From: Leidyana gryllorum EB-2025a
Lineage: Eukaryota; Protista; Apicomplexa
Assembly (NCBI GenBank): GCA_048772705.1
Contig: JBLWGC010000213.1
Span: forward strand, 372,001-436,000
Length of the DNA stretch: 64,000 nt
Direction of reading: 5' to 3'
Under the pieces are notes generated by a model. It was given only the letters and a program-made list of their open reading frames with translations, did no database searches and was not told where the DNA came from. The translations under genes and the position numbers were made by a program. Positions 13,397 through 37,650 of this stretch are shown one piece after another. How positions within the stretch are numbered: the stretch's first letter is position 1; each line of letters begins with the position of its first letter.

Positions 13397-15092
13397 ATGG
13401 AAGGATTCTTGAACGAGTGTTTGAACGCGTGTGTCTCGCGTGACCACATCCACGCTCCGGCGTACAACTCCAAGCGTACTGAGGTTGACTCCTCTCACCC
13501 CAAAGCGGACCGGGGCAACAGAGTCGTTCCCCCGGTGTACAACAGTGCTGTCGAGGCAATCGGCAACACGCCCATCTTCCGCTTGCACAAGCTGGAGAAA
13601 AAGTATGGATTGGAGTGTGAGTTTTATGTGAAGGCGGAGTTCATGTCCGTCGGAGGATCCGTGAAGGATCGGATTGCTCGCCGAATGGTGGAGATGGGGG
13701 AAGCGGAAGGGTCCATCAAACCTGGTGACGTGATTATTGAAGCGACAAGTGGGAACACGGGAATTGGCTTGGCCTTGATGTGCGCTGCTCGTGGGTATCA
13801 AATGGTTGTGGTCATGCCAGAAAAGATGTCTGCTGAGAAGGCGAATGCTTTGAAAGCCTTGGGGGCCAAAGTCATCAGAACACGCACTTCAGCAACATGG
13901 AGTGATGATGACTCACACATTGTGACAGCCTATCGCTTGCTGGAGGAAATCAACAGTCGGTGCGAGAACACCGGCATTCGGGCTTTCCTATTTGACCAGT
14001 GAGTGCTGACAGTTGAGAAGAGCGCGTGTCATTGATTGGGTTGTTAGGTACCAATCGGTTGGTAATGTTCTGGCTCACTATCAGGAGACAGCGCAGGAGA
14101 TCCTCGATCAGATGGACAACAAGGTGGATGTGTTGGTTGCAGGAACAGGAACTGGGGGTACGATGACTGGGATTGCGCAGCGACTCAAGGAGGCCCTGCC
14201 CAACTGCCGGGTTGTCGGTGTAGATCCTGAAGGCTCCCTACTGCACTATCCTCGATCAGAGTGGGACAAGCACACTACCAGTGCGTACGAAGTGGAGGGC
14301 GTTGGCTATGATTTTATGCCTCCCGTATGCCACACTGACCTCGTGGACGAGTGGCAGGTGGTGAACGACAAGGATGCGTTCAACCGGGCTCGTGAGGTGG
14401 TGGCTTTGGAAGGGCTTCTGATGGGCGGCTCATGTGGGTGCTCGTTGGAGGCTGGGTTGCGAGTGGCCCGTACGTTGGAGAAAGGAAAGCGAATCGTTGT
14501 TGTGCTGCCCGACTCCATTCGCAACTATTTGACCAAATATGCTTCTGATCCCTGGATGCATTTCCACGGTTTCAAGCCGGTGGAGTTTGGTGCCGACAAG
14601 CGGAGTGTGAAAGAGTTACTGGCGAAGGCGGATCTCAAGCTGACAAAGCTGCGCGATCTCCCGCAGATGGGCCCGAAAACCTCGTGTATCGAGGCGTACA
14701 GGTTGCTGAAGACGGCACCGCATGGGGCTGGAATCGTGAAGGACGGGGACAAGGAGATTTTGGGATTCATCACACTGGACGATCTGGTCCCCACCCTGAC
14801 GAAGAGCGATGGGAACCCGCAGAAACCCGTGGATGAGATCGTCACTTTCAAATCGTTTTTCCCGATCTCATACGAGTTGGATGCGAGTGCCCTGAGTACA
14901 GTGATCGAAGCTTGTCGGATGGGCTCGAAACAGAATGCGGCGCTCGTTGTGTTGATGCCCAGTCTGAAAGCTGATGAGGTCGACGCTAATTCTAACCGCC
15001 TCAAGTTCAAGGAAACGACGCCCGAGGAAGCCTTAGATTGCGAATTTTTGAGCACGCCACAACAACTAGATATTCTGGCTGCTCGATTTTAG
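13397..15092 (+). CDS. CBS: Cystathionine beta-synthase with a C-terminal CBS-domain region (2 exons)
   Basis: GGSVKDRIA (PLP lysine), EATSGNTG, GTGTGGT, EGVGYDF and LPDSIRNYLTK. Intron 13999..14047. Confidence 0.92.
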
Positions 15093-24120: not shown

Positions 24121-24160
24121 CGTGTGTGTTTTGGGCAAAATTGATGTGAAAGATACGGCT

Positions 24161-25423
24161 ATGAGAAAGCGGTCGAGTTACCGCCCAAATCAACCGACCT
24201 ATGCCAATCATCTCTTCCGGTCAGAGGCAGACGAGGAGGAGCTCGAGGTTGATTTATCCGTGCTGCGAATTCGAGCCGCTTCAGGAGTAGCTGTTCGAGT
24301 GACTGCAGCTCCTCATCCTCGCTTCGAAAAACGAGCCATGTCTGCCACCACCACCACAATGCCTCCCCATAGTGACAAAGTGACTCGTCGATCTAATCTT
24401 TCCCCTCGGGTACCGATCGGTTTGCACCCGCAGTTTGTCCGACGCGCCTCCTCGGCGGCTGCCCTAGAGTTAGACAATTCACTCTCCCTTCGTTCAGAGC
24501 TCAATAAGAGGTCCTATTCCTACCAACGGGCGCGACACCCTCCCAATTTTTCGCCCATGACTAATACATCGCCTACACAGGCACCCACTGAGCCTCGTAT
24601 CGACTCAGCTCTCTCCAAATGGCTGTCCTTCTACGGCAACTCTTCGGATGTCTACTCTACCTCTGATTTACATATGATGCGGCGAGAATACTCACCATCG
24701 AACGAATTGTCGCCTCGACACTTGCACACAAATTGTCCTCTCAAGTTATTGGGAGAGTGGATCGCGGCGGCTGTGAAAGCCCACAATGTGACTGAAGCCA
24801 ATGCGGCTACCTTATGCACGGTAGACGCTGATGGCTACCCCACTGGAAGAGTGGTCTTGATAAAGCAAATTACTTCAGAAGGCCTCGAATTCTACACAAA
24901 CTATGACAGTAATAAGGCTAGGGAACTGGAGGCGGGGCAGAACAAGGCTTCGCTGTGTTTCTGGTGGCCAAGCTGCGAGCGGCAAGTGCGCTTGCGAGGG
25001 GTCTGCGCAAGGCTCTATCCTGAGCAATCTGATGCCTACTTCAGAGTGAGGCCAGTGGCCTCACAAGTTGGTGCATGGGCAAGCAGACAATCCAAAGTTG
25101 CCCTCGGGGGACGAAGCGAAATTGACACAGCGTACCAGGCCAAGACGAAAGAGTTTGAAGGTCAGATTGTGCCACGTCCACCTCATTGGGGCGGTTTTGT
25201 CTTACGAGTAGATCAAGCGGAATTCTGGCAGGGGCGTCCCAATCGTATGCATGATCGTGTGCTATTCCGATTGCGCTCACCCACTGCCCCAACTCCCGCG
25301 CTGAAGCCCAAATTGACACCACGATCTGGCTCTCGTAACGAATCCGACGACCTCAGCTTCGACGAGAATGGCTACGCAGTCCTTCCTGGGGGCCGATGGG
25401 AAGTTGCACGCTTGTATCCCTAG
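24161..25423 (+). CDS. pdxH: Pyridoxine/pyridoxamine 5'-phosphate oxidase with a long N-terminal extension
   Basis: 'EANAATLCTV..GYPTGRVVLIK', 'FYTNYDSNKA', 'ERQVR', 'SQVGAWASRQS', 'PRPPHWGG', 'EFWQGRPNRMHDR' and terminal 'RLYP'. Confidence 0.93.
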   Translation: MRKRSSYRPNQPTYANHLFRSEADEEELEVDLSVLRIRAASGVAVRVTAAPHPRFEKRAMSATTTTMPPHSDKVTRRSNLSPRVPIGLHPQFVRRASSAAALELDNSLSLRSELNKRSYSYQRARHPPNFSPMTNTSPTQAPTEPRIDSALSKWLSFYGNSSDVYSTSDLHMMRREYSPSNELSPRHLHTNCPLKLLGEWIAAAVKAHNVTEANAATLCTVDADGYPTGRVVLIKQITSEGLEFYTNYDSNKARELEAGQNKASLCFWWPSCERQVRLRGVCARLYPEQSDAYFRVRPVASQVGAWASRQSKVALGGRSEIDTAYQAKTKEFEGQIVPRPPHWGGFVLRVDQAEFWQGRPNRMHDRVLFRLRSPTAPTPALKPKLTPRSGSRNESDDLSFDENGYAVLPGGRWEVARLYP

Positions 25424-28311: not shown

Positions 28312-28934
28312 GTCTATTGCGCCCTGCTTGATGGCTGCCTCCTCAGTCTGCTTCTCACTCCTACCGTTGCAAATCCACGTCCTCACCTCTCTCAGAACTT
28401 GATCTGCCCAGTGCTTGCACACCAGTATCTTCACACACAGACACTCAGCAGAGGCCACATGTATTCTGGTTTATCCCATAAATAGTCCGTGTGCAGGTGG
28501 CCGACGATTGGGAGAAGCTCTTAGCACTCATGGTACCATCTGCTAACACATTGGCCAGACTAGTTTGCGTGGAGGGGTTAACTTTTATTTGACCATAAGT
28601 GGATCTCCAGCTCAGGGATGCTTCTTCTGATCTCTCTTGTCTCTCCAGCATGGTGCACACAACCCACAACAGAAGTTCAGATCTGACCTCTGGAGCTGAA
28701 CACCTTCATGTAACGTTGTTTTCGCATGAAATCTGGATTTATTGTTCGGTAGAATACAGAATGCTTGAAAAGCTCTGACGCAAAAAAGCACACCTACCAG
28801 CACTTGCCCCAATATGAAAGCACTAGTGACCTCCCCGGTGTTCCAGCTGGGGTCGCGCAGTGCGGTCTGTGGGGGGTGGTGGCGACGTCCGCCTGTACAC
28901 AGGAAGGTTGAGTACCGAGGAGTGTAGGGTGTAC

Positions 28935-30101
28935 TTACACAAAGACACTCCTCAACGGAGGAAATCCATTAAATTCGACAGCTGAGTAGCTCGCGGTGTA
29001 AGCACCCGTGGACAACCAATACAACCGGTCCCCCATGGCGACATTTAGCGGGAGGTTGTATTTGTGTTGTTCGTACATAATATCCGCCGAGTCGCAGGTG
29101 GGCCCGGCGATAATTACCTCCTCAACCTCTCCCGTCTTCTCCGTATAGATGGGGAACTTAATGGATTCATCAAGAGTTTCGATGAGACCAGAAAACTTGC
29201 CAACATCTGTGTAGACCCATCTTTCAACTGCCGTACGGCTTTTGCGTGCGACTAGCACAACTTCTGAGGCCAAAACACCTGCATCTGCAACTAATGATCG
29301 GCCAGGTTCCAGGATAATCTCGGGAAGGTCGGTACCAAAACTTTCAGTGAGGTACCGCGTGATCTCGGACGCATAGACCGACAGTTCATTGGTCCGCGTC
29401 ATGTAATTGGCGGGGAAGCCGCCGCCTAAGTTGATCATTTTCAAATGAATGCCATCCTCTTCGCGAAGACGTTCGAATATGACCTTCACTTTAGCTAGCG
29501 CTGCATCCCATGCACTAATTTCACGTTGTTGGGAGCCCACATGGAAGCTGACGCCATACGGAATCAGCCCCAATTCTCTAGCAAGAATCAGCAGATCCAT
29601 AGCCATATCAGGCTGGCAACCAAATTTGCGAGAAAGAGGCCAATCTGCAGTGCTCGACCCTTCGGTCAAAATCCTAACGTATATCTTGCTTCCTGGCGCA
29701 GCTTTGGCGATGTTGCGTACGTCAGCTTCCGAGTCGGTGGCGAAGAGTCGAACCCCTTTCTCGTAGAATGATCGGACATCTCGTGACTTTTTGATTGTGT
29801 TGCCGAACGAGAGGCGATCGGGGGATACTCCCGACTTGAGGACTTTCTCCAACTCGTAGATCGAGGCAATGTCGAAGTTGGAGCCCTTTTCCGCCAGCAT
29901 ATCAACGATTTCATTCGCTGGGTTTGCTTTGACGGCGTAGTAGATTTTGGCGAAGGGAAAGCCCTTGACTAAATCGTCATAGGCCTTTGAGATAGTTGAT
30001 AAGTCGACGACAAGTACCGGAGTCTCCTGGTCATCAGCGCAAGCTTTGATCTGCTTGAACACCTCAGGAGGGTAATAATCGGCAATTTTGGCGACCGACA
30101 T
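28935..30101 (-). CDS. speC: Ornithine (or lysine/ornithine) decarboxylase, fold type III, bacterial SpeC-like; intronless CDS
   Basis: YAVKAN (PLP lysine), FDIAS, FHVGSQ, GGGFP, EPGR, GPTCD and GAYT. Bacterial-style segments ADWPLSRKFGC and YSAVEFNGFPPL. 388 aa. Confidence 0.93.
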   Translation of the reverse strand: MSVAKIADYYPPEVFKQIKACADDQETPVLVVDLSTISKAYDDLVKGFPFAKIYYAVKANPANEIVDMLAEKGSNFDIASIYELEKVLKSGVSPDRLSFGNTIKKSRDVRSFYEKGVRLFATDSEADVRNIAKAAPGSKIYVRILTEGSSTADWPLSRKFGCQPDMAMDLLILARELGLIPYGVSFHVGSQQREISAWDAALAKVKVIFERLREEDGIHLKMINLGGGFPANYMTRTNELSVYASEITRYLTESFGTDLPEIILEPGRSLVADAGVLASEVVLVARKSRTAVERWVYTDVGKFSGLIETLDESIKFPIYTEKTGEVEEVIIAGPTCDSADIMYEQHKYNLPLNVAMGDRLYWLSTGAYTASYSAVEFNGFPPLRSVFV

Positions 30102-30115
30102 ATCCGAGAATCACC

Positions 30116-30160
30116 CTAACGAGAGGGAGTGGCCACACCGCTGTGTATGAGACTACTCAC
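30116..30160 (-). other. Putative 45-nt spliceosomal intron in the ODC 5' UTR
   Basis: The minus strand reads CAGG|GTGAGT...CTCCCTCTCGTTAG|, ending 14 nt before the ODC ATG. Size and donor match other introns in the window. Confidence 0.7.
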
Positions 30161-30372
30161 CCTGCCCTCCAACTTCGGACCTTTTCCGCCTACCTCGCCA
30201 CGAAAACTTTTTACTAATCTCTATTCACAGATCCTTATTGAGGGCCTAACATCGCACGGCCAGGATTTTTCAATTGAGGAAACACCCATTAGGAGATTCT
30301 AGCAGGGTTTGCTCTACACCAGAACCTCCAACCTGGAGTCGCCTTCGGATTGGTCACCTCCTTGCGGAAGTG

Positions 30373-32109
30373 TCAGATGTCGGAGCGTACTTCCATAGTA
30401 ACGGCCTCTTCGCTGTCAAAATCAATCATTGAACTATCCTTGCCATGCCCGAGGCCAATTTCGATGTCTAGGGGTCATTGGGGGGAGAATAAGGAAGTGG
30501 GGTAGGAGGAGGAGAAGCGTTGGGGGGGTAAGACTTGCCGCTGACGTCCACAGCCGTTCGCGCTCTACGTTGCTGGTCGGCCACAGTGGCGGGTAGGCAC
30601 AGCCCAGCACATTCTCCGGTTACGCCTCGCTGCAAAAAACATTGTCAGCATAGGATCGCGCTACGAGGAAGATGGGGGGGGAGCGATGGGACCCCCGTCG
30701 TGAATATCTCCATGCTCATGCTCGATTGGAAGGTGATCCACCGCCCCCGACATGCCTCGTCGTACAAAGCCAAACTCTGTCTTTCATGCCAGTGGTTCCA
30801 TTTCTACTTACCGCTGATAGCCATATAATCGAGTTGGACGCAACAACAGGAAGTACGCCGAGTGCTAGAACTACTTGCGGAGTCATCGGTCCCGGTGTGT
30901 CAACGATATGTACTACAGCCACTGAGCTGCTGGTGACCACGAAGAAGGCCACCAACCCCACAATGTCCCACGCGACACTTAGATAGAAGCTGCAAATCCG
31001 TCAATTGATCGAGACTGATTGCAACCCGTCTCACCGAGGTACAAGAAACATGATAATACAGTACAACAAGTTACCACCAGCGTAAAGTTGTAATACCCAG
31101 TGACCGTGGATAGACACGGCGGCCGCCATAGTGGCCAAAGTCAGACTCAATCCACTCAAGGTGAAGATATAGCCCAGGGGCCGGATGTTGTAGCGCACAT
31201 GCGCAAGCAAGAACCATATTATCCAGGTCTGTAGATTGCCAATAGCATTAGGCAGGCAGGCATCTATCGTGTGCTCACCGCGAACAAAACAGCAAGAGTT
31301 GCATAGATGTAGGGTGTGCCGGACCACGAGTGACCGTTGCTGATGCAGCCCATGGGGGTGGTCCAGCAGCGATTCATTGCATCAAATACGTTAGAGAAGG
31401 ACTGCACGGGTTTACGGCTGAGCAGGACATTGTCTTCCGCTACGCGACGGAAGTGCCATGTGAAAGTAGTCACAATTGTCATGCCTGTGCAGAATGCGGC
31501 ATCCAAGCCTGCGCGTGCGTGTGACACGAGTCCGATTGCGCACGCTGAGCTCACACACGATATGAGATAGAGGATCACTCAAAGCGGATGCAGTGAACCA
31601 TTTTTCAACATTCAGGAGCCATGGCACCCATACACAACAATACATTGCCAGTAATGGTACATGGGCTGCCAAATGGAGAGCATAGGCTCCGGGAATCGCA
31701 GATAAAAGGACGGTTAACGCGCAGACCTGGGCAGTACTTTCAGTAGACGGGTCTATCCAGCACTCACGTGTAATATAATTGCACTAACAGACGTTCGAGC
31801 GTGCGCAACAGCTCGAAGACGACGATTCTCAAGACTGGGACTTAGCATCCTGGCCGGATTGGTCCCATGATACTGCCAGTTGGGGGAGTCGGCACCTGGG
31901 CGGGGCACACTAGATAAAGAAGAAGATAAACGCTTCCGCGACTGACTGCGGATATAAGATCCCGCAGTAGTCCGCGAGTCAGGTGCCTGACTTGTAGGTT
32001 CGCTGGCAGCCGTAACCATCCCGAACGTCACGACACATTGCATAGGCGGAGGTTCATGAGAGGCTATCACCGGCTCAGTTTGAGGTCTAGGAACTTCCTC
32101 GTCGCTCAT
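30373..32109 (-). CDS. Orphan multipass membrane protein, multi-exon
   Basis: Hydrophobic exon ORFs 31264..31578, 31031..31327 and 30716..30961, with a polar N-terminus and a Pro-rich C-terminal exon ending 'EVRSDI*' at 30373. Some junctions are uncertain. Confidence 0.55.
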
Positions 32110-36280: not shown

Positions 36281-37545
<1,265 letters not shown>

Positions 37546-37650
37546 TGGTATTGATGTAGGCAGAGAAGGGAAGGAATGCAAGACAAAAGTTTTTAGAATC
37601 CAAGCGGTGCGGCTGCTATTGGGAGAGCTGGGAACGATCCCTTTTTTGGG

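Follow-up and report, generated by a model that had tools for sequence, protein, structure and literature searches.

Apicomplexans are usually pictured as obtaining putrescine either through the Plasmodium fusion enzyme or by salvage from the host. Plasmodium falciparum makes polyamines de novo with a bifunctional fusion of AdoMetDC and ornithine decarboxylase (ODC) (PMC3912857). A published table lists Cryptosporidium and Toxoplasma as lacking polyamine synthesis from ornithine (PMC5146892), and Toxoplasma, Babesia duncani and Cryptosporidium have been reported to lack ODC or the ODC step. Among bacteria, speC is the ODC gene of Pseudomonas syringae DC3000, where putrescine is very low when both speA and speC are mutated and recovers with either gene (PMC10017717). 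The S. meliloti lysine/ornithine decarboxylase Odc2 accounts for about 90% of putrescine and shows a ten-fold preference for ornithine (PMC10385936). Bacterial acquisitions described in Cryptosporidium include IMPDH, thymidine kinase and trpB (PMC545779). The locus described here, from the gregarine Leidyana gryllorum, is best explained as a whole as a captured Pseudomonadaceae ODC gene that has been domesticated and would supply putrescine, a probable reading in which we infer contiguity, splicing, expression and substrate.

The window, a 64-kb stretch that forms part of contig C213 (at least 436 kb) in a 15.5-Mb assembly, carries an ATG-initiated ORF of 388 codons (Table 1) that, judged by its sequence, is a genuine fold-type III PLP decarboxylase gene. 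The initial annotation had described a 388-aa decarboxylase of this fold with all its motifs, and this description was confirmed: all four peptides that it quoted are present, and PF02784 (E 1e-52) and PF00278 (E 1e-14) both match over their Pfam cut-offs. Both the N-terminal PLP barrel and the C-terminal sheet domain of the fold-type III (alanine-racemase-fold) PLP decarboxylases are found, with the catalytic and PLP residues intact: K58, H187, the GGG loop (G226-228), EPGR (E265-R268), C336-D337, FNGF (F377-F380) and Y368. The first six of these can be aligned with human ODC, where they correspond to the Schiff-base Lys, the His stack, the GGG phosphate loop, EPGR, GPTCD and FNGF. The checked active-site and specificity-helix residues match those of the Pseudomonas homologues, the sole difference being Leu310 for Met, and the protein scores below the NCBIfam cut-offs for lysA, speA, nspC and DokD (DAPDC, long ADC, CANSDC and D-ODC, respectively). 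A profile search of the assembly returned this gene as the only PF02784 match, and its region is single-copy. At a distance of 3.5 kb from this PLP-dependent enzyme is a gene for pyridoxamine 5'-phosphate oxidase, an enzyme of PLP salvage, and two further PLP enzymes are encoded in the window; the clustering of PLP-related genes near the ODC gene is probably coincidence.

Table 1. Positions of the ODC-type gene, its candidate processing signals and neighbouring genes within the window.
Feature	Position	Strand	Remark
PLP enzyme	14013-15092		
Pyridoxamine 5'-phosphate oxidase	24122-25423	plus	
Candidate second coding exon, 22 residues then TAG	28823..28892	minus	hypothetical; includes four consecutive prolines
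Candidate 46-nt intron, GTAAGT donor, pyrimidine tract, CAG acceptor	28893..28938	minus	contains TAA stop
ODC-type CDS, 388 aa, bacterial length	28935..30101	minus	ends at bacterial stop-codon position
Leader exon segment, 14 nt, before ATG	30102..30115	minus	read from sequence
Candidate 45-nt spliceosomal intron, 5' leader, GTGAGT...TTAG	30116..30160	minus	ends 14 nt above ATG
A/T motif AAAA-n-TTTT	30203..30213	.	like motif just above RPB2 ATG
22-codon upstream ORF	30221..30289	minus	putative
Hydrophobic gene	30716-31672	minus	directly upstream of ODC gene
Cys-rich ORF, 323 aa	32239-33210	plus	
PLP enzyme	36556-37581		

A bacterial origin of the gregarine ODC is well supported by sequence comparison. 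The best 120 matches listed are 76-80% identical to it over the full length, and the named members are Pseudomonadaceae, Halotalea and Marinobacter. Nearly all of the best 80 matching GTDB loci belong to Pseudomonas, and the best bacterial match scores 710 bits versus 132 bits for human ODC. Judged by annotation, the gene is presumably orthologous to the SpeC loci PA4519 and PSPTO_4572. The protein fell inside Pseudomonadales in three trees: in a Pseudomonadaceae clade in the quick tree (96 SH-aLRT) and the careful tree (94/90), and in a 15-row gammaproteobacterial (Pseudomonadales) clade in the third (99/95), with eukaryote-type ODCs far outside. Its sister group is unstable (Halopseudomonas-like sequences at 97/88 in the careful tree, no resolution in the tree with the 15-row clade), and its branch is long, at 0.5 versus a median of 0.1 in the careful tree, or about five-fold. 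Eleven changes occur at positions near-invariant among 120 bacterial homologues, most of them conservative.

Grouping with eukaryotic ODCs, an approximation of the refuting test named in the initial annotation, was rejected (p-AU 0.0047), the eukaryote-type set consisting of one insect and two viral ODCs. The lack of alveolate ODCs in the tree could accommodate a native, vertically inherited alveolate ODC that looks bacterial, but such a gene is hard to reconcile with a protein 80% identical to those of a single bacterial family; with the protein nested deep in one bacterial order and the eukaryote-type ODCs so distant, the chance of native descent appears minute. Transfer of the gene from a bacterium to the gregarine is, by our assessment, highly probable. 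No gregarine orthologue was present among the matches listed for the whole protein, for residues 225-388, for the 50% representatives or for JGI metagenomes; these lists were filled by bacteria, and a native gregarine ODC would rank lower.

Other relatives were considered as sisters of the gregarine protein. A JGI sequence (P0136, L129) was its long-branch sister in the quick tree only and moved into Pseudomonas in the careful tree; the first ~90 residues of this sequence look like another ODC lineage and the remainder is Pseudomonas-type, and it is probably an assembly chimera. Sister placement of P0204 was also rejected (AU p=0.0012). This ODC-family protein, 50% identical, is encoded on a 1.5-kb contig (Logan SRR28594499, L092) with a GA-repeat leader and the look of a eukaryotic transcript, and possibly represents an independent capture of a bacterial ODC by another protist. 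Separately, a 75% identical homologue is found on a 555-kb P. aeruginosa plasmid record (L210, LT969519.1) among putrescine uptake and catabolism genes, indicating that the bacterial ODC family also occurs on large extrachromosomal replicons.

Genuine residence of the ODC gene in the parasite chromosome is likewise well supported by the assembled sequence, and contamination is an unlikely source. The surrounding genes in the window are of eukaryotic type and encode RPB2, myosin, SNF2, Vps52 and a pairing of Kelch repeats with a HATPase domain, an arrangement found in apicomplexan MORC. The initial annotation had placed the gene among intron-rich eukaryotic genes; the neighbours are indeed eukaryotic, but "intron-rich" was an overstatement, RPB2 having three introns of 43-56 nt with GTRAG or GTACG donors. 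Directly upstream, the hydrophobic gene is apparently spliced, and its pieces gave no Pfam match. The Cys-rich ORF looks secreted, with a His right after the signal-like N-terminus and a His-rich tail, and it gave no match in Pfam or NCBIfam.

The codon usage of the ODC gene resembles that of the host. Its GC3 is 0.56, versus 0.59 in host exons and 0.73-0.88 in Pseudomonas orthologues, and it distributes its codons for Arg, Leu and Gly as host genes do. Codon fit was -1.73 bits per codon under the host model versus -1.84 under a mid-GC gammaproteobacterial ODC model, and since its codons fit the host model better, a mid-GC donor fails to explain the composition; the ten ODC genes from which the bacterial model was built all favour that model. 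At four-fold sites, identity to the best bacterium is 32% versus 28% at random, while the protein is 80% identical, a combination which indicates that the gene has long resided in the host under purifying selection.

A bacterial fragment joined into a gregarine contig, as an assembly chimera or contaminant, would account for a protein so similar to those of common bacteria of the environment and the gut, and would fit an integration known from the assembled sequence of one gregarine. However, the bacterial-like part coincides exactly with the CDS: the 84 bacterial loci compared are similar only at positions 28930-30093, at ~70% DNA identity, no bacterium exceeds ~71%, and the flanks match none of the neighbouring genes of those loci on either side. 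Further arguments against such a join are the host-like codons, the eleven changes at near-invariant positions, junctions with neither notable repeats nor mobile-element repeats, and, at each end of the CDS, intron signals of host type in the right orientation. Together these make a chimeric origin very unlikely. Matches to sigma-70 promoters and terminators were at chance level. Nesting in a bacterial clade, host-like composition and eukaryotic flanks all uphold the earlier proposal of a captured bacterial gene, as far as sequence can speak to it.

Expression of the captured gene would probably involve splicing. A scan of the whole window for intron-like elements (GTRAGT donor, 38-62 nt, pyrimidine tract, YAG acceptor) found 23, versus 3.7 per strand in shuffles, with a chance share of 7.4 of the 23, about one third. 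The initial annotation had called the gene intronless and without a C-terminal tail. Its coding body does lack an intron and its TAA lies at the bacterial stop position, but both descriptions are doubtful because two host-type intron-like elements bracket the CDS, and the gene model probably needs one or two introns. The chance of finding an element like the 5' one within 100 nt is ~0.006, and the in-frame TGA between the 5' element and the ATG places that element, untranslated, in the leader. Nearby, the AAAA-n-TTTT motif (five in the window versus 1.7 +/- 1.6 expected) is a possible, weak candidate for a host promoter or start element, and transcription may start below the 22-codon upstream ORF.

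At the 3' end, the donor of the candidate intron starts at the third base of the last ODC codon; the same kind of exon ending is seen in the host genes for Vps52, an aminotransferase and SNF2. Splicing here would remove the stop and add a short polyproline-containing tail (the candidate second exon was translated on its own, apart from the ODC body), which is presumably too short between basic residues for a textbook PEST region. Alternatively, the gene could be transcribed without this splice, the donor over the stop being coincidental and the protein ending as in bacteria, with the transfer itself intact. The TAA stands exactly at the stop position of the bacterial homologues, so that the unspliced protein is complete, and the element was found after the fact; yet it agrees with host introns in its donor, its length of 46 nt, its pyrimidine tract and its acceptor, and the chance of such an element at a given stop is ~0.2% by rough arithmetic from the scan. 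On balance we lean towards a real intron over the stop codon, and regard the unspliced ending as a tentative but serious possibility.

The remainder of a polyamine pathway can be traced in the assembly. As the initial annotation had stated, there is no AdoMetDC fusion: AdoMetDC is a stand-alone gene on contig C216. Every named relative of this AdoMetDC comes from a gregarine (Blabericola, Gregarina niphandrodes, Protomagalhaensia or Gregarina sp.), which marks the host as a gregarine. Its leader contains a 40-codon upstream ORF (uORF) ending Pro-Ser-stop (L003:909-1031). Such uORFs in AdoMetDC leaders serve in polyamine feedback. The uORF is near-identical in a related gregarine (L011:2493-2615), with 87% DNA identity over 136 nt versus 71% for the main ORF, which suggests that polyamine feedback may be live in these organisms. 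An intron-containing spermidine synthase gene is also present. Searches of the assembly found neither an AAT-fold decarboxylase nor an agmatine deiminase; an antizyme search of the genome was blank, as was its control search.

A single ureohydrolase (arginase-family) gene was found in the assembly, as one ORF on contig C21 (L006:1165-2127). It resembles bacterial clusters of Bacteroidota/Zymomonas type, and the solved structure closest to it is that of the Zymomonas enzyme (6KSY), which has been shown to be an arginase (PMC6988801). It has Cys at the position of the first metal-binding His and falls below every NCBIfam cut-off. A homologue was detected in 1 of 301 sampled Pseudomonadota and in none of five close ODC-bearing genomes. 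This rarity and the lack of a match in those five genomes point to a separate capture, and the ureohydrolase is, from its sequence, a probable second bacterial transfer in the same pathway.

An ODC role for the 388-aa protein is quite likely, since the family is annotated as ODC, putrescine production by the 50% identical S. meliloti Odc2 has been characterised, and genes for the other steps of the pathway are present. The protein would act as an obligate homodimer, with PLP on Lys58 and Cys336/Asp337 of the other subunit completing the site, as in its family. It would decarboxylate L-ornithine to putrescine, possibly with minor lysine activity, as the only putrescine-making step between the bacterial-type arginase-family enzyme and a eukaryote-type AdoMetDC and spermidine synthase; putrescine would then lead to spermidine and to eIF5A hypusination. 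A genuine transfer could also have delivered an enzyme with another main substrate, making cadaverine from lysine, or agmatine from arginine with the ureohydrolase as agmatinase. In favour of this, the solved structures nearest to the protein are those of bifunctional lysine/ornithine decarboxylases, at least two switches of ODC homologues to arginine are documented, in Pelagibacter and in a chlorovirus (PMC9992855), and the low NCBIfam scores of the ureohydrolase would also agree with such a role. Against this, the checked residues agree with the Pseudomonas homologues except at Leu310 and with Odc2 at nearly all positions, the nearest solved relative of the ureohydrolase is a demonstrated arginase, and the arginine route would end in putrescine too. 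A main substrate other than ornithine is improbable, and ornithine is the one we favour.

Under the favoured reading, a gregarine ancestor would have captured one fold-type III ODC gene from a member or near relative of the Pseudomonadaceae. Its residence in the nuclear chromosome would have been so long that silent sites became saturated and codons came to match the host, with purifying selection preserving 80% identity in the protein and all of its catalytic residues. The gene would now be expressed as a spliced host mRNA, probably with a leader intron and perhaps with the stop-removing one. The initial annotation inferred that the lineage had regained putrescine synthesis; replacement of a native ODC and regain after loss are about as possible as each other. 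A more elaborate history, which we consider speculative and rather unlikely, is that the lineage lost putrescine synthesis and rebuilt it through two independent bacterial captures (the Pseudomonadaceae ODC and the Bacteroidota/Zymomonas-type arginase) feeding native AdoMetDC and spermidine synthase. The bacterial ODC stop would then have become a splice donor, putting ODC under host control, with the polyproline tail as a possible polyamine-sensitive or degradation handle in a genome whose antizyme search, like its control, was blank.

If this account is right, a stand-alone bacterial ODC would constitute a third apicomplexan arrangement for putrescine, and gene capture would be a way to reverse or circumvent polyamine auxotrophy in the phylum. 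With an intron-like element at each exact edge of its CDS, the gene would also offer a compact, testable example of foreign DNA fitted to spliceosomal expression. A literature search with most subscription journals outside its scope found no report of this gregarine ODC or of its transfer. Bacterial gene capture by gut apicomplexans is already well documented, and this one is a new instance involving ordinary enzyme chemistry.

Compared with known systems, the gregarine ODC is closest to those of Pseudomonadaceae (Halopseudomonas, Stutzerimonas and Pseudomonas). The near-colinearity with Pseudomonas-type ODCs noted in the initial annotation holds at 77-80% identity over 99-100% of the length, and these enzymes are of equal length and share the same active-site residues; in contrast to them, the gregarine gene is nuclear, with host codons, an accelerated branch, and candidate introns and tail. 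Odc2 of S. meliloti, at 50% identity, has the same checked catalytic and specificity residues except one, but belongs to an alphaproteobacterial sister clade. The P. falciparum enzyme, likened here by description rather than by sequence, shares the reaction and fold family, but its ODC is fused to AdoMetDC, whereas in the gregarine the two are separate genes of different origin. In the Cryptosporidium transfers, too, individual enzyme genes of proteobacteria entered the nuclear genome of an apicomplexan living in the gut, though unlike the gregarine case these transfers do not include ODC.
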